Assembly (NCBI GenBank): GCA_001600695.1
Contig: BCKQ01000011.1
Span: 587,239-595,059, forward strand
Length of the DNA: 7,821 nucleotides
Origin: Ascoidea asiatica JCM 7603
Taxonomy: Eukaryota; Fungi; Ascomycota
Reading direction: 5' to 3'
Every line of letters begins with the position of its first letter. Within the stretch, counting starts at the first letter, position 1. The notes under the pieces are model-generated. The model had not been told where the DNA came from. It did not search any database and worked only from the letters and a program-made list of their open reading frames with translations. Shown here piece after piece: positions 10-7,821 of the stretch. The position numbers and the translations under genes were made by a program.

Positions 10-410
10 CCTTAAATACGTATCATAAAAGTTGAAAATGATACAAAAGTGTATCAAAAAAATAAAAATGATACAACACTGTATCAAGAGAGTAAATAGG
101 AGATAGGAAATGTAAACCGATAGGATATTGATAACAATATGTATCAATAAATAGCAAATTAAACACGGAATCAGTAACCGATAAAAAAATGATACAAAAG
201 TGTATCAAAAAAATAAAGGTGATGCAAAATTGTATCCAAAAATAAAAGGGCTACAAATTGGTATAAAAAAATAATGAGGAAATAAAAAATAATAAAAAAA
301 AGAGAGGTAACTTTTTAGTAAAAATAAAATGTATTTTTTTAAAGATTACCCTAATTGACTATTGTAGTTACTAAGGTCAGAAATGATCGAAGAACCATTT
401 CTGTCAACAG
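10..410 (+). repeat. Left arm of 401-bp inverted repeat (TIR-like)
   Basis: Position p pairs with 7831-p without gaps. 10-176 is identical to the reverse complement of the right arm, with 4 mismatches in 10-331 and 11 in 332-410. Similarity stops abruptly at 411/7420. Confidence 0.97.
39..266. repeat. Array of TGATACA-N4-TGTATCA palindromes (mirrored at 7565-7792)
   Basis: Perfect copies at 39-56, 69-86 and 190-207. Degenerate copies at 129-146, 220-237 and 249-266. Start-to-start spacings are 30, 60, 61, 30 and 29 bp. Confidence 0.9.
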
Positions 411-575
411 GAAAAAGTAGCCTTAATTATTTCTTTAATTTGTTTCGACATTTTAGAAAAAGAATTTTATTTTATTAATTTTGATTATACTACCAAAAAC
501 ACAACCCATATTAAACAATGTTTCATCCTTTGATAAACACTCTACTAAAAGGGTGGTTAGTTTTTACTGTTGTTT

Positions 576-580
576 GTTTT
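576..580. repeat. 5-bp target site duplication, left copy GTTTT (right copy GCTTT at 6810-6814)
   Basis: 4/5 match flanking both inferred LTR outer ends. 5 bp is the expected TSD length for copia elements. The sequence is low complexity, so a chance match is possible. Confidence 0.6.
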
Positions 581-1534
581 TAAAGTGAATTCGTGGCAGA
601 TAATAAACTATGATTATTTTCAAGACCTAAAACAGGCATTTCAAAGAAAAACTAAGATGTAAAACGTGATCTTGAACAAGGCTTTAATTTATTAATAAAA
701 AAAATTAATAAAATAATAATAATAATAAAATAATATTAATAAATCGAGATGAAATACTAAACAATTGGGCATAATAAACGCTTATAAATAGTAAACTGAG
801 ATAACTTGAACATACAAACAAACTGAAATAAACTAAATAAAGAATGTTCTATTGATTTACTTTAATTTAAGAGCGAAACTAAACTGTAAAATCAAAAAAT
901 ACAATTGAATTTTAAAACTCAAACTCAGACAAATTAATAAAAAAAAGATAAAAACAAATTAAGAGGAAATTGATTTTAAATAAATGAAATCTCCAAATCA
1001 AACAACTGCAAACCTTAACTAAATTTGAGGTACTGAAAACAAAAGTTCACTAGAATAAAACAATTACTGAGCACAAAAATTTGCTAATGAGAACAGCACA
1101 AACGATTATTATTTGATAAAAATTAATTTACTTTATAAATGATCCACGCAAATAAATAAACCTAGTTCATTTTTCTGCGAAATATTAAACCTATCATGTC
1201 CACTAAATGGAAATTTCAAGACCACACCCCCAGTGCTGAATGATGAGAATCCGTTAGCCGTATAATATTGGAATTTACTTTTAAAAGTTCAGGCAACTGA
1301 AAATAATTACCATCTAGTATAATCCTTGCAATATATATTAAAGCCATATATACCGCTCACCTTGACAACATACGCATTCGTTGTAAAACAGAAACACTTC
1401 GCCTAAACAAATTGGGAAACAAAAGTAAAACAAAACATAAAACAAAAACAAATTATATTGAAATATGACAATTGCCAAGGCGGCAATCTTCGGTAAACTT
1501 CCTTACTTTGTTTGTGAATATATTTAGTAATTCA
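581..1534 (-). repeat. 3' LTR (~954 bp)
   Basis: Direct repeat of 5858-6809 (offset 5277 at the left end; 21 mismatches in the first 100 bp). On the minus strand it starts TGAA at 1534, 3 nt after the PPT. The outer end reads TA instead of CA. Confidence 0.88.
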
Positions 1535-2335
1535 AAATCTCTCCCTTTCCAGTTTTGAATAATTATCCAAAACACGGCTTATTGAAATAGTTGCCACCAT
1601 TGATTAATACTTGATATGATTTATTTTTAATGATCCATTGTTGTTTTATTCCTTACTGGCATGGTATCGGATATCATAATGTTTGTTCCTAGAGTTCACT
1701 TTTTGTTTCCTTGATAAAGTTATTACAGCTTCATTATCGAAATAAACAAAAACTTAGGTGAAAATGATTGTTAAAGAATAACTTTATTTCTGTCCACCAT
1801 CGGGCTTCTTTAAAAACCATCAGCAATCCCCGAATGTTAGGCTCAGTTTACGACGTACATAGAGGAGTAAAGTTATAGCGCCGTGCAATATGTGAATGAT
1901 CTGGCAACTTTAATATAATAGCGATACTAATCCTTTTTTTGGACCACTTGAAAAATCCTCCTCACAATAAATGTTAATTGAATTAATATTGATATGATCT
2001 TTGAATCTCAAACATTTTTCTTTTAAGAAATATGAATAATTCATTATATTTTCAAGTTTTTTAAATACGTTTGGATGTGGAAATTCACAAACTCTTGCCA
2101 TGTATTGAGCAGCATAAGAAATATCTGGATGACCTTTATTGCCTATATACATTAAAGATCCAACAATTGATCTGTAATTCTGGATACAGTTTACTAAAGT
2201 ATCTGCATCATAATCCATTTCTTTATCAACTAATCCAAAATAAACGCCACTAACAGTTGAAGTACGTCTTTTATCATTAATACAGTCATTGGCTTTACAT
2301 AGCTTTTTGATATTATCTTCTAAGGATAATTTCAT
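1532..2335 (-). pseudogene. pol: RT C-terminus and RNase H, degenerate
   Basis: YRSIVGSLMY...HPDISYA in ORF 1910-2335, then IYCEEDF. After frameshifts, YFDNEAVI...RNKHYDIRYH (about 1744-1655) by hand translation, with internal stops. Confidence 0.9.
1538..1550 (-). other. Polypurine tract
   Basis: Minus strand GGAAAGGGAGAGA (13 purines), followed by TTT and the TGAA start of the 3' LTR. Confidence 0.85.
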
Positions 2336-3579
2336 TTGTTCAATGATCCATCTGTGTTAAAAATCTTTTCAACATTAAAACTTAACAATATACCTGTACC
2401 ATCTGACTGTTTAAGTGTAATTCCAGACTTGAATTTGTTTTGAGTTGTATTCATAAGGTTCTTAAACACTTCCTCAGCTTTAGTCATAATTACCATATCA
2501 TCAACAAAGACTAATACAATAGCTTTAATTTCTAAATTTTTGTTCCTTAAATAAATAGAAGGGGCCATTGGAGAATCCTCGTAATTATATTCTTTAAGCA
2601 AAGCAGCTATGGTTGAGTACCATAATCTACCACTTTGTTTCAAACCGCAAAATGCCTTTAACAATTTTGCTATTCTAGTTTTACCAGCAGCACCGTTTAT
2701 ACCATCAGCTACATATATAAAAATATTTTTATCAAGCTCAGCATTTAAGTAAGCAGTTGAAATGTCCATCACATTTAACACTAACTTTTCCTTCAAGTAT
2801 AATCCAATACATATATTTAAAATAGTCAAATTTAATGTTGGAGAATATGTGTAATCATAAGTATTAGCATATTGAAGATTACCTAAACGAACTAATCTGG
2901 CTTTAAATACACTATTGCCTTTGATGTTGAAAACCCATTTTGTTGTGATCGGTCTGCTTTTCCATGCATCAGTAGCATTGCAAGGTTTAGTCCAAGTTTT
3001 ATGAAGTTCTAAACTTTCAATCTGTGAAGCCATTGCTTCTTTCCACTTTACCCATTCTTGTGAAGCTTCAGCTTGCATAACTGACTTTGGAATAACAACT
3101 GGATTAATATTATTTATCAGCAAGATATCATCAGGTAAGTCCTTATATAAATTTTCAACGTCTAACCTATTAAATAAGAATTTGATTTTGTTCTTGTATA
3201 GACTAGAAACATCTTTCTTTGTCTCAGGCTTGGTTATCTTGCCTTCCAAGTGTTTTATAGTCCTAGATGAAATTGACCTATCATTCATAGATAGGACAAC
3301 TTTAGCATTCAGAAGATCTGATTGCAAGTTCTTTGAAATAACTTCATCGGAATCCCCACTACCAGCCTTTTTTTCAATTTCATACTCATGACCTAAGTCT
3401 TCATTTTCACCAACACTTTCAAATTCTGGAACTAGTTTAATTACTTCTCTGTCATCATGACCTATGTGACCATAAACCTTATCACCGGGAATCACATCTT
3501 TATTTGTAATTCTTGATTTATTTTCATTTTCAACTTCCATATCATTATCTTCCAATTCTTTCACAAACTTTTCATACAT
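2332..3579 (-). pseudogene. pol: IN-RT linker and reverse transcriptase core (open fragment, frameshifted at ~2335)
   Basis: WKEAM...ESLELHKTW, TKWVFNIK, FKARLV, MDISTAYLNA, GLKQSGRLWY and VFVDDM are copia-type RT motifs. Confidence 0.95.
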
Positions 3580-3759
3580 ATTTTCTTGAGCAACAGCTTA
3601 TTTAAAAAAAAAATCTAACATGCTTAGTGTCAATACAATTATTCAACCTTTCAATAAAAATTTTCCATCCAAAACAGTTTGTTGAAGGACTTATCAAATA
3701 ACCAACAACATCTTTCGATTTCATTTTATCTTCGATATTTAATCTGTTACCACAAGGTC

Positions 3760-4495
3760 TGATCCAAAATTATGAAATTTTCCAATGTTGAGTACCTTAC
3801 CTGTTAAGTAAGGGTATGGACTGTCTCCTAATCTGTTGTTAAAAGTGCAGTTTCTTAACATGTTTCCATATAAAATAGCAAGAAGAAAAATTGTTGTACC
3901 CTGGATTTTAATTTGTGACTACCAGCTAATAAAACTTTTGCATCTCTAACCAAAATATGATTTTTCTTCTCTGCAATAGCGTTTGACGCAGGAGTATAAG
4001 GAGTACTAAAACTCTGTAAAATTCCTTCCCTAATGCAAGTAGAATTCATCTCTGTTAAAGTATATTCGGCACCATTATCGCCAAGAATCCTTTTGATTCT
4101 ATCATTATACTGAGTTTCAACCAATCTGATGAAATTATGAAAACTGTTAACCACTTCCGATTTATTTTGCATTGGTATTGTTTAACAATAACTAGTGAAA
4201 TCATCTGTGAATGTAGCAAAGTAAGAATAATTCAGGATTTTGAATGGTCCAGCGATGCCACTATGCACAACTTCCCATAGAAATGATGCCATTTGATCTA
4301 GCATACTTGAACCTTCATTAGCATACTTGAACCCTTATTAGCAAACCTTTCTGTTTTTCCTAGACCGCATACTTGTCGTTGAAGATCTTTCATCTCCTTG
4401 ATATCTCAGTCCTTAACACCAAAAACTAAACCATGATTCATACTTTTCATAATTGTATCTTTATTAATATGTCCTAATGCACTTTGTAAGTTTAC
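3760..4495 (-). pseudogene. pol: Integrase domain, degenerate (boundaries approximate)
   Basis: Decayed HHCC (LQSALGH...RQVC) with TGA at 4406-4408. VVHSGIAGP has the first catalytic D replaced by G (4257-4259). Also YFATFTDDFT, GDNGAEY, SNAIAEKKN and then LRNCTF..SPY..LTGK..FG in another frame. Several frameshifts. Confidence 0.92.
4299..4343. repeat. 20-bp tandem duplication causing an integrase frameshift
   Basis: TAGCATACTTGAACCTTCAT / TAGCATACTTGAACCCTTAT / TAGCA. Removing one unit restores the frame between the HHCC region and the catalytic core. Confidence 0.9.
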
Positions 4496-4559
4496 ATAAT
4501 TTACCAAAACATCTGGTTTCTTAATATATTTCATATCAATATTCCATACTCTATTTTTA

Positions 4560-4880
4560 TCAAAACTAGGGAAATATTTATGTTTATCTTTGCCAGAAAT
4601 AAGTTTTCTACCTGAAACACTTCCCTTTTTATCTTCTAGATTAATTACAGCAAAAAGTGTATGCCAGATTTCACAAAACTAATGACACTCAATCTTCATT
4701 TCAGTATCATCTTGAGCTAATACTAATGTACCAACTTCTTTTGGAGTAAAACTTTTACCAGTTGGACCTTTGAAATTCAATGATGAATGTTTAACATCAT
4801 TAACATCATGTAATAATAATCTATTACCTGTACTAGATGAACCAGCTCGTGAATCTATAATTATATTATTAATTTCGGTA
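4560..4880 (-). pseudogene. pol: Aspartic protease domain, degenerate (boundaries approximate)
   Basis: Hand translation IIIDSRAGSS (DSRA at 4844-4855; canonical DSGA) in the same frame as the zinc knuckle. In-frame TAG at 4679-4681. Confidence 0.8.
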
Positions 4881-4993
4881 CAATCTTTTGAAACATCTAA
4901 ATTAGCATATAATATTAGAAGTTCTGTGAATTTTGCTTCAAACCGTGCTCTATCATCACTACTACCATTTCCATTTTCATGGTTTAACTTAAA

Positions 4994-5916
4994 AAATTGA
5001 ACCTTTCTGTGACAAACAACTCCACAATGAAAACATTACTTGAAACTTTCTTCTTCTTAGAATTTTTCTGTTTCTTTTCATTTTTACCATTGTTATTAAC
5101 ATTGTTGACACCCAAGTTTGAATGTTGTTTAATTGCATCATTTGCATCAATATCCTCACTCATTATGATCAATGTATTAAACAACTAGTTTAACGATAGC
5201 TTCGAATTTTGAGCTCTAATAAACGTTCTAAATAGAACTATACTACCACCTGAACCTTTCAGAACATAGTTAATTCTAGTTTCATCTGAAACCTCAGATG
5301 CAGCACCTTTGATTTCCATCCTAATTGAATTTAGTTTCTTAATAAATTCATTTACATCTTTTCCTGAATAAGAAAGTTTATCTAAATCTGCTAAAATCTC
5401 AAATACCATCCTAGGGTTTCCTACCGTGACAACCAAGTTTCTCAATTTATGTACACCATGAGATAAGGGGTCTAAAAATCCTGCTAGATTATCACCAACA
5501 CAAAGAGTAAGAATATCATTTAATATATCCGAGATATTATCATCCAATTCAGTGAAAGGAATAGTTTTTTGTGAAACAGTTTTGATTCCCAACATACCAA
5601 TAACTCTTCCAAAGTTACCAAACCATAAATTCCATTTGGATTTAGATTTTAAAACACCAATAACTTTACCATAATTGAGAGCATAATTAAATTTTAAAGT
5701 ACCACTATGATTTGATTTTGAAGTCAATTTTACTTGACTAGTAAAATGATTGGGTTCATTATGTCCATCAACTGTATCGTTAGCCACATCCAGAATGTTT
5801 CCAAAAGCATTATCACCTCCAACAACTTGATTAAGTATATCATTAGCGGCGCTACCATGAAGAGAATTCGCGGCAGACAAAAAGGTATGTTCTGCTTCAA
5901 GACCTAAAACAGGCAT
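4994..5916 (-). pseudogene. gag: gag (capsid plus degenerate zinc knuckle), interrupted
   Basis: Open from ATG 5916 (inside the 5' LTR; an alternative in-frame ATG lies at 5961) through the PBS (SLHGSA, compare Ty1 ISHGSA) to TAG 5185-5187. It continues in frame through an N/K-rich tract, then frameshifts near 5036 into CFHCGVVCHRKVQF (4994-5035). Confidence 0.85.
5845..5857 (-). other. Primer binding site for initiator tRNA-Met
   Basis: Minus strand TGGTAGCGCCGCT is complementary to the 3' end of yeast tRNAi-Met (...AGCGGCGCUACCA) and contains the Ty1 PBS TGGTAGCGCC. It lies immediately after the LTR CA. Confidence 0.96.
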
Positions 5917-6809
5917 TTCAAAAAAAGACGTAAATGTAAAACATGATGTTAAATAAGGCATTAATTTATCAATAAAATAAATTAATAGAATAATAATAGT
6001 AATAAAATAATAATACTAAATGTAGATAATATAATAAACAATTATATATACGAAACTAAGATAATTCAAAACAACATACACATAAATAATATAAACTAAA
6101 TAAAGAATATTCAACTTATTTAGATTAATTTGAAAACAAACCTAATTTGTGAAATAAAAAAATAAAATTAATTTGTAACACTCAAACTCAGACAAATTAA
6201 TAACAAAAACATAAAAACAAATTAAGAACAAGTTGATTTTGATTAAATGAAATCACCAGATCAAACAAACTCAAAACTCAATTGAACTTTGAAGTAATAA
6301 AACGAAAAGTTCAATCGAACAAAAGAATTAGCGAGCAATAAAATTAGCTAATAAGAGCAACACTAAATGTTGACTAATTAAATATAACCAGTTTACATTT
6401 TAAATGATGCAAGCAATCAAATAAACCAATTTCACCTTGTCGCCAAGTATTAAACTTGCCTTTTCCACCAAATAGAAATTCAAAGAAAACACTACCAACT
6501 TTAATTTATAAGAATAAGTTTAGCATACAATATTTAAATTGCCTTTTAAAAGTTAAGGCAACTTAAATTTATTACCATCCAAAATAATCGTTGAGATATA
6601 ATTTACAGCCATATATGTCGAATACCTTGATATCATAAGCATTGGTTGTAACAATAAAACACGCGACATAAACAAATTGAAAAACAAAAATAAAACAAAA
6701 CAAAAATCAAAAAAAATTATTGTAAAAAATTTATAATTTCCAAGGATGCAGTATTCACCAGTTTTCAAATAGTAAAGTTGTTGTTTGCTTGTGTAAGGTA
6801 TGTTATTCT
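5858..6809 (-). repeat. 5' LTR (~952 bp)
   Basis: On the minus strand it ends ...CTCTTCA at 5858, directly abutting the PBS. Homology to the other LTR extends across a ~14-bp indel (about 6757-6774) to 6809. The outer TG is altered to AG, so the outer boundary is less certain. Confidence 0.85.
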
Positions 6810-7291
6810 GCTTTCAATCATTAATATCAAACCCAGAAATAACACTTAGATTGGCGCATATTTATCTCTGCTAGCTTAGTCGGCCACACCAAACACTTTC
6901 ACCTTGTCCCAACAAGGTATTATTAGAACAAGTTTTCAGAATTGGTTTTTTTTGATAAATGCAGTTATACGTCCAAGACAACGAGAACTGCAGTTCCAAA
7001 AATACGCGAGGGTACATGCGTCGCTTTGTTAATTCCTGGTCTCTCTGGTTCCAGTTAAATTGAGTTACACAGACAACTAAACTTTGCTGATTGCTTGCAT
7101 TGTCCCAAATATACAGGACCACCTTGACATCAGGACGTCGTTTAGTGGAAGTCCAATTGACAGAAACCCGGGACTATTGTTTCAATTTTCCTAACCTAAC
7201 CTAAAAAAGTTAAAAATGTCATGCCAGCTTTCACAAAAGTTGGGAAAGGTTAAGAAAATCTAACGTGTAGAACTTCTTTTTCCTGAATCAC

Positions 7292-7342
7292 GATTCGAAC
7301 CAATTCAGTTCTTCATTAAATGAAGACTGCTCCAGTACGCTA
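7292..7342 (-). promoter_or_regulatory. Putative Pol III type-2 internal promoter (A box + B box), tRNA-like
   Basis: Minus strand TAGCGTACTGG (7342-7332, A-box-like) and GGTTCGAATC (7301-7292, B box), 30 bp apart. Downstream T5 and T6 runs at 7216-7212 and 7208-7203. Confidence 0.55.
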
Positions 7343-7420
7343 CCAGCAGATCGCCGGAGCGGCAAAAAAATTCCGCCACACATAGTATAAAATGAAGCCA
7401 AGAAAAAAAAACAATAGGTG

Positions 7421-7821
7421 CTGTTTAGAGAAATGGATCTTCGATCATTTCTGACCTCAGCAACTACAATAGTAAATTATGGTAACCTTTAAAAATTTTC
7501 ATTTTATTTTTACTAAAAAGTTACCTCTCTTTTTTTTATTATTTTTTATTTCCTCATTATTTTTTTATACCAATTTGTAGCACTTTTATTTTTGGATACA
7601 ATTTTGCATCACCTTTATTTTTTTGATACACTTTTGTAGCATTTTTATATCGGCTACTGATTCCGTGTTTAATTTGCTATTTATTGATACATATTGTTAT
7701 CAATATCCTATCGGTTTACATTTCCTATCTCCTATTTACTCTCTTGATACAGTGTTGTATCATTTTTATTTTTTTGATACACTTTTGTATCATTTTCAAC
7801 TTTTATGATACGTATTTAAGG
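7421..7821 (-). repeat. Right arm of 401-bp inverted repeat (may continue beyond the window edge)
   Basis: Reverse complement of 10-410 at about 96% identity. The window ends inside or at the end of the repeat, so the true terminus and any TSD are not visible. Confidence 0.97.

Follow-up and report, generated by a model that had tools for sequence, protein, structure and literature searches.

How can two nearly identical inverted repeats enclose a retrotransposon that looks much older than they do? The question is raised by a stretch of 7,821 nucleotides from the fungus Ascoidea asiatica JCM 7603 (contig BCKQ01000011.1, here C11, positions 587239-595059; this whole stretch is the window). An earlier note, made from the letters alone, had seen there an age paradox: inverted arms of very low divergence around an old element with strongly diverged long terminal repeats (LTRs), although a host that only received the insert ought to be no less diverged than it. 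We analysed a stitched region of 37.8 kb around the window, in which negative positions and positions above 7821 lie outside the window and are given in window numbering, and searched the genome (20.3 Mb in 71 contigs). It is proposed that the arms are probably two separate LTR-like insertions that landed beside an older Ty1/copia element (copia X) and were later partly gene-converted, and that the age paradox is only apparent. The locus is an ordinary nested-retrotransposon locus with a clear gene-conversion footprint and an LTR-like family that, as far as was searched, is undescribed.

The near-identical arms are present in the window as the earlier note had claimed, at 10-410 and 7421-7821, where 401 nt are 96% complementary with 15 mismatches and no indels, but these are the inner parts of longer units. 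The inverted repeat runs about 1.3 kb farther outward on each side, past the window ends, and BLAST aligns -1309..410 with 7421..9140 over 1,720 nt at 98.9% identity without a gap. Resolved to the base, each arm measures 1,717 bp and has TG...CA ends (C11:585931-587647 and C11:594660-596376): arm L, on the plus strand, spans -1307..409, with its inner 409 bp at 1-409 of the window, and arm R, on the minus strand, spans 7422-9138, with its inner 400 bp at 7422-7821. The spacer between them measures about 7.0 kb and is not palindromic. The limits of the unit are directly visible in a boundary test in which arm L with 3 kb of flank on each side was aligned to 13 fetched loci: homology breaks off at the same edges as in the arm (-1312/-1308 to 408/412) in at least seven other copies, on C12, C32/C29, C18, C15, C13 and C3. 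Both arms and the copies on C12, C18 and C3 begin with TGT(A/G)TAC and finish with ...CAACA; the terminal inversions of the unit are short, about 7 nt, and imperfect. Genome queries with the arm, split into an inner piece of 401 bp and an outer piece of 1,309 bp, found at least ten further family members, on C12, C32, C29, C18, C15, C13, C3, C23, C14 and C4, at about 69-91% identity. The family was not found on the largest contigs, and every other copy found in the assembly is solo.

Each arm is flanked by a target-site duplication (TSD) of its own. That of arm R is perfect, with GTGC at 7418-7421 on the left and GTGC at 9139-9142 on the right; that of arm L agrees at three of four positions, with GGAC at -1311..-1308 on the left and GGAA at 410-413 on the right. 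Among the other copies, those on C12 and C3 both carry GTAC/GTAC, the C18 copy carries GTTC/GTAC (three of four), and the C32/C29 copy agrees at two of four; perfect TSDs in three of the six independent copies are far above chance expectation. TG...CA ends together with a short TSD of fixed length are the signature of integrase-mediated insertion. Because the unit has these features it is read as a solo LTR, and an integrase would have made the arm insertions. This filing is provisional, since neither a full-length parent nor a primer-binding site (PBS) or polypurine tract (PPT) was found: the assembly yielded no PBS or PPT adjoining any family copy, and no direct pair of copies within 4-12 kb around an internal region. 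The parent element may be extinct or missing from the assembly. Three candidate explanations for the unit or its placement were tried and rejected. The C18 copy does not serve as 5' LTR to a nearby gypsy element, as no PBS follows it and the gypsy RNase H match lies 4.3 kb away with no gag or pol open reading frame (ORF) between; the arm is not a mini-element of the terminal-repeat retrotransposon in miniature (TRIM) kind, as it has no internal terminal direct repeats; and targeting to tRNA genes found no support, ARAGORN reporting nothing in 22 loci and Rfam nothing at its gathering threshold, with only a chance sRNA match at E = 0.13.

That arm R entered pre-existing DNA can be read directly from its flanks. 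Just inside it lies U, a small dispersed repeat of 230 bp (7180-7412, plus strand), which matches C13:386834-387065 and C4:1502247-1502443; just outside it lies Z, a 2.9-kb repeat (about 9172-12038) that shares 79% identity with C13:383888-386780 and 76-82% with C4:1500752-1502138. At both paralogous loci (C13:383888-387065 and C4:1500752-1502443) U and Z are adjacent, and here arm R splits them; when the flanks of arm R are joined in silico, the product aligns with both paralogues in unbroken order across the join. Arm R was inserted into repeat DNA older than itself, and the C13 and C4 loci serve as empty sites for it at about 76% identity, which place the insertion, within a few bases, at the TG/CA ends of the arm. 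Z was also considered as the internal region of the arm's parent, and rejected, because Z and the arm do not stand in the same relative orientation here as at C13 and C4. With each arm a discrete unit bearing its own TSD, and arm R inserted into older DNA, the premise that the arms are the passive host of copia X is not supported.

The same observations bear on the suggestion that a young system of terminal inverted repeats (TIRs) captured old chromosomal DNA, so that the arms would be the TIRs of a DNA transposon or composite (Pack-MULE-like, or two copies resembling miniature inverted-repeat transposable elements) with copia X as cargo. Inverted, near-identical ends around unrelated DNA are what Pack-MULEs and composite TIR transposons have in common with this locus, and Ginger-type DNA transposons share both the TGT...ACA ends and the 4-bp TSDs. 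Unlike such elements, however, the pair as a whole has no TSD: its outer flanks, ...AAGGAC on the left and GTGCCGG... on the right, form no direct repeat. The unit lacks long TIRs, possessing only the short imperfect terminal inversions described above; all 13 of the other loci examined hold solo copies, with no near-identical inverted pair, no second pair and no other cargo; and no transposase was found, the sole ORF of the arm being a near-neutral orphan of 200 aa. We consider this origin very improbable, and the earlier note's idea of captured cargo was abandoned.

The mismatches between the arms are distributed very unevenly. Nineteen positions do not match, one of them an N, which leaves 18 that can be scored. 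The outer part of the arm has three differences in 1,481 compared sites (0.2%; Kimura two-parameter (K2P) distance 0.002), whereas the innermost segment (176-409 on the plus strand of arm L, mirrored at 7422-7655) has 15 in 233 (6.4%; K2P 0.067), a contrast with a Fisher p of 3.7e-11. The 3.7% divergence of the 401 bp in view is not typical of the arm, being concentrated in the innermost 235 bp or so. The inner segment does evolve faster throughout the family, other copies being 72% identical to one another there and 80% in the outer part; an inner rate 1.5- to 3-fold higher nevertheless predicts 32-64 outer differences where three are observed (P ≤ 9e-11). Differences in the arms, and likewise in the LTRs discussed below, were polarised by the per-column majority state of the copies. 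Because the derived states are private to each arm, six in L and ten in R, the inner segment shows genuine decay on both sides. In both segments the arms group as sisters at 100/100 support, and the nearest other family member reaches 91% identity to them over the outer part and 85-86% over the inner segment. We infer that gene conversion produced the heterogeneity, resetting the outer part and leaving the inner segment unconverted.

Two accounts that dispense with conversion have to be weighed at this point. In the first, two independent insertions of the same lineage underwent no later conversion, and the contrast was already present at insertion because the LTRs came from different source RNAs or master copies that had one end in common and differed at the other. 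The TSD and boundary evidence fits this account equally well, and mosaic LTRs are mechanistically possible, since both ends of the RNA contribute to the LTR that reverse transcription makes. Such an account needs masters that were 0.2% apart over 1.5 kb and 6.4% apart over the adjoining 235 bp, which would itself require recombination; no such masters or other young copies exist in the assembly; and the private inner changes, six and ten, are as expected from decay in situ. It is regarded as unlikely. The second account supposes that a resident copy was duplicated in inverted orientation by an event at the DNA level, such as fold-back repair or template switching, and that the arms are young paralogues. 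In its favour, the arms are by far each other's closest relatives and no other young copy is present. Against it, the edges of the duplicated block would have to equal the unit's TG and CA exactly at both ends, a TSD-like flank stands at each arm and is perfect for arm R, arm R cleanly interrupts U and Z, and a single event predicts uniform divergence, not 0.2% beside 6.4%; an inverted duplication is accordingly rated as clearly improbable.

Active homogenisation of the arms, by inversion, conversion or selection, had been one of the two solutions offered in the earlier note, and it finds support in a modest form, as a gene conversion tract. Inversion of the spacer by crossover between the arms was considered and rejected, as cross-combinations of the arm flanks mismatch and the within-arm TSDs match. 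Because each arm keeps its own TSD pair, there is no net crossover inversion of the spacer in the assembled state.

Could one of the arms be an artefact of assembly or of palindromic reads? Positions 1822 to 7821 of the window were compared with short-read contigs from three public DNA runs in two studies; contigs of this kind cannot show the orientation of the spacer. A contig of 846 nt covers 6718-7524 with no differences and at single-copy depth (about 47-51) in all three runs, and links U to arm R, with eleven alleles specific to R. Some contigs have the arm L letter at 7582, 7647 and 7654 (mirrors of arm sites 249, 184 and 177), and two runs on one sample, X1 and X2, have different letters at 7582. 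Because the contigs carry alleles of both arms, both arm versions are real and not assembly artefacts. What might suggest otherwise is the set of single N letters that bound the window, at positions 0, 7822 and 7831 (C11:587238, 595060 and 595069): those at 0 and 7831 stand at mirror positions of the two arms, which hints at polishing ambiguity, and that at 7822 mirrors a G at position 9. These letters probably arose from the mixing of reads of both arms during polishing. An artefact is also at odds with four arm flanks that are all unique and different, with the 18 differing sites, with alleles of both arms in one sample and with the non-palindromic 7-kb spacer. We regard this possibility, which the earlier note had itself named, as the least probable of all.

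The other half of the paradox is the age of copia X. The element lies on the minus strand at 581-6750 and consists of a 3' LTR (581-1485), a degenerate internal region (1486-5847), a PBS (5848-5857) with the sense-strand sequence TGGTAGCGCC that directly abuts the 5' LTR, and the 5' LTR itself (5858-6750). Its pol is broken, as had been noticed: the RVT_2 domain (in the ORF at 2332-3579) and the rve domain (a fragment at 3855-4172) survive only as fragments in separate ORFs, and the reverse transcriptase (RT) match contains one TGA and one TAG; a gag-side ORF lies at 5185-5961. TGGTAGCGCC pairs with the 3' end of tRNA-iMet, which is priming of the Ty1 type. The TSD reads GTTTT on the left (576-580) and GTATT on the right (6751-6755), a match at four of five positions. 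Because the PBS abuts the 5' LTR and the 5-bp TSD agrees at four positions, copia X is one genuine single integration, and the DNA at 414-575 and at 6756-7179 was contiguous before copia X arrived. The first of these stretches, between arm L and copia X, is the only copy in the genome; the second, between copia X and U, is likewise unique and relatively GC-rich (39%).

The strong divergence of the LTRs, with indels, is as the earlier note described it: they are 75% identical over 916 aligned columns, 26 of them gap columns, and differ at 205 of 889 ungapped sites (K2P 0.277). That divergence has accumulated very unequally. In a tree of 12 LTR copies both LTRs of copia X fall on one side of a 100/97 split, and their terminal branches measure 0.22 for the 3' LTR and 0.067 for the 5' LTR. 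Tajima relative-rate tests with five outgroups assign 128-136 unique changes to the 3' LTR and 47-56 to the 5' LTR (p 1e-7 to 2e-10); counts of 130 against 47 are a 2.8-fold difference (p ≈ 1e-10), and the excess is spread along the 3' LTR rather than gathered in a block. The 5' LTR shares 83-84% identity with copies on C28 and only 77% with its own partner. Copia X might be taken for a chimera of two elements, and the earlier note had allowed that its LTRs could belong to different subfamilies. They are true sisters, joined by 46 shared-derived sites, and the 100/97 split, the PBS at the 5' LTR and the TSD all counter a chimera; what stood of that reservation is that the divergence is not simple age, the pair not being clock-like. 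The 5' LTR may have been pulled toward other family members by ectopic conversion, or the 3' LTR may have decayed faster. On the short branch, the age per lineage of copia X comes to only about double that of the unconverted arm segment, and not to many times as much.

We propose that the locus was built in the following order. Copia X would have integrated first, into DNA that was then contiguous. Two 1,717-bp LTR-like units of one lineage would have inserted later, separately and in opposite orientation, 166 bp to the left and 666 bp to the right of copia X, and would have stayed apart long enough to diverge by about 6%. As close inverted copies they would then have exchanged sequence by gene conversion, one recent tract resetting the outer 1.5 kb or so to 0.2% and leaving the 6.4% divergence of the inner 235 bp or so in place. 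On this account the age paradox vanishes, because the arms never hosted copia X, because their near-identity is partly secondary, and because the 23% divergence of the copia X LTRs is inflated by strongly unequal rates.

Several points weigh against the proposed history. No full-length element with the unit as direct LTRs flanking a PBS, gag-pol and a PPT was found in the assembly. The TSD of arm L is imperfect, at three of four positions, and since G and C nearly always occupy TSD positions 1 and 4 in this family, only the two middle bases are informative. The paralogous empty sites are only about 76% identical, which fixes the insertion point of arm R within a few bases and not exactly. In the absence of any other young copy, two near-simultaneous insertions 7 kb apart need a preference for this nest as target, or luck. 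Finally, the heterogeneity could have arisen without conversion, for example through chimeric LTRs from two source RNAs.

A similar inversion of apparent ages has been described in plants, where roughly one nested LTR element in four seems older than the element that hosts it, a pattern ascribed to gene conversion (Jedlicka, Lexa & Kejnovsky 2020, PMC7251063). Like those nested clusters, the present locus has units with TG...CA ends and a TSD of fixed length, many solo copies, younger units beside or inside older ones, and an inner element that appears older than the outer. Unlike them, its conversion partners are two inverted solo copies and not the LTRs of one element, and its unit, at 1.7 kb, is long for a yeast LTR, contains a relic ORF of 200 aa and has no full-length parent in the assembly.

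That ORF is found in each arm, on the strand opposite to the arm L orientation, at about -673..-71 (minus strand) and at the mirror position in arm R (plus strand). A reading frame of this length is improbable by chance at about 27% GC, and it is intact in five family copies (both arms, C12, C32 and C29), with one stop in the C15 copy. The ratio of nonsynonymous to synonymous substitution rates among copies is 0.5-1.3, which is consistent with neutral decay of a sequence that was ancestrally coding. No relatives were found in Pfam, in NCBIfam, by a word-based protein search or by a feature search of the ESM Atlas, and the AlphaFold model is uninformative, with a mean predicted local distance difference test score (pLDDT) of 36.8. 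Within the reach of these searches, the LTR-like 1.7-kb family that carries this relic orphan ORF is undescribed. The internal anatomy of the unit further includes an array of repeats of about 30 nt with TGATACA-N4-TGTATCA palindromes (28-267, mirrored at 7564-7803) and, close to the outer arm ends, (GTAATAAATA)x8 as a tandem array, at about -1162..-1083 and at its mirror in arm R. Two further observations concern loci elsewhere that carry family copies. C32:14489-23999 and C29:82000-91455 are 96.5% identical over at least 9.5 kb, including the family copy with identical flanks; the two small contigs represent either haplotigs, from a heterozygous or hybrid genome, or a recent segmental duplication of large size. 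Beside the C12 copy stands an unrelated 1-kb inverted repeat of 92.6% identity with a 1.7-kb spacer (C12:167413-168413 and 170130-171096). In U, a conserved motif of about 90 nt (7180-7270) with a (CCTAA)3 or TTAGG-like triple occurs at no fewer than six loci in all, the others being C5:388742-388818, C5:130000-130092, C10:444297-444389, C13:386834-387065 and C4:1502247-1502443; it has no tRNA or Rfam match and could be a protein-binding or telomere-repeat-like element. A tRNA-like stretch at 7290-7370 belongs to the degenerate dispersed unit.

The surroundings of the window raise the remaining alternative. On the left, 44 bp from arm L, lies a second degenerate copia element, copia Y (-11769..-1353, C11:575470-585885, minus strand, about 10.4 kb), which has short LTRs (228 bp, 88.6% identical), a leader of about 1.7 kb with tandem repeats and a large gag-side region; beyond it the nearest host gene on that side, a DUF1989 gene, ends at -11980. 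On the right follow repeat Z, more dispersed repeats and, at about +20.1 to +21.3 kb, a further copia RT. Host genes are absent from -11980 to at least +21.3 kb, so the window belongs to a nest of retroelements, gene-free over at least 33 kb, in which insertions of several generations have accumulated.

Such a setting brings to mind the inverted-repeat (IR) centromeres of budding yeasts, known from Candida tropicalis (PMC4741521), Komagataella phaffii (PMC5010909) and Barnettozyma spp. (PMC12711049), in which arms 0.5-5 kb long and 99-100% identical flank a core of a few kb within a long region free of genes (PMC12711049, PMC4741521). The inverted repeat and its 7-kb core might accordingly be a functional structure, either a centromere of this type or an invertible segment made of retrotransposon parts, whose identity is kept by use. 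The geometry agrees, with 1,717-bp arms at 98.9% around a spacer of about 7.0 kb, as do the gene-free, retroelement-rich surroundings, and homogenisation is the usual explanation for the identity of IR centromere arms. Unlike in those centromeres, the arms here are transposable-element insertions with their own TSDs, and the inverted repeat is explained without function by two such insertions; the family forms a comparable near-identical inverted repeat at none of the 13 other loci examined and was not found on the largest contigs. Moreover, the intact within-arm TSD pairs indicate no net inversion.

A second centromere type offers a partial likeness. Centromeres made of Ty5-like retroelement clusters occur in Cyberlindnera sargentensis and Wickerhamomyces spp. 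(PMC12711049; bioRxiv 10.1101/2025.04.25.647736), and priming from the anticodon stem of a tRNA is diagnostic of Ty5 (PMC12711049). In Cyberlindnera, the only centromere IRs come from retrotransposon parts, and no function has been assigned to them (Hession et al., PMC12711049). The present locus resembles a Ty5 cluster in being a gene-free assemblage of degenerate copia-superfamily elements and solo LTRs. It differs in that the PBS of copia X, being complementary to the tRNA-iMet 3' end and not to an anticodon stem, indicates Ty1-type priming, and in that retroelement fragments are widely scattered (genome-wide, RVT_2 is matched at least 77 times and RT_RNaseH_2 at least 60 times) and not gathered in one cluster per chromosome, so that a nest of transposable elements marks no single site per chromosome. 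A functional structure, whether centromere or invertible segment, is held to be an outside chance, and the narrower proposal, that the arms and the retroelement-derived core form or sit in an IR centromere assembled in situ, with homogenisation as part of its upkeep, seems slightly less probable again. If true, an IR centromere built from retrotransposon parts would be an intermediate between the Ty-cluster and IR-type centromeres of yeasts, and only this low-probability reading would make the locus important.

Taken as two LTR-like insertions beside an older copia element, the locus is chiefly a warning: when two inverted copies are almost identical and the element between them looks older, neither a TIR system nor a flip-flop switch nor a paradox has to be invoked. 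Here the case was resolved by unit boundaries, by TSDs at each arm and by paralogous empty sites. The 1.7-kb LTR-like family would gain more than minor interest only if a full-length parent came to light. The arms themselves are, on this reading, a small, clean case in which conversion between solo copies in inverted orientation has left an abrupt boundary, with 0.2% divergence on one side and 6.4% on the other. Together with the 2.8-fold asymmetry between the sister LTRs of copia X, such conversion undermines dating by LTR divergence in compact yeast genomes, as is known for plants.

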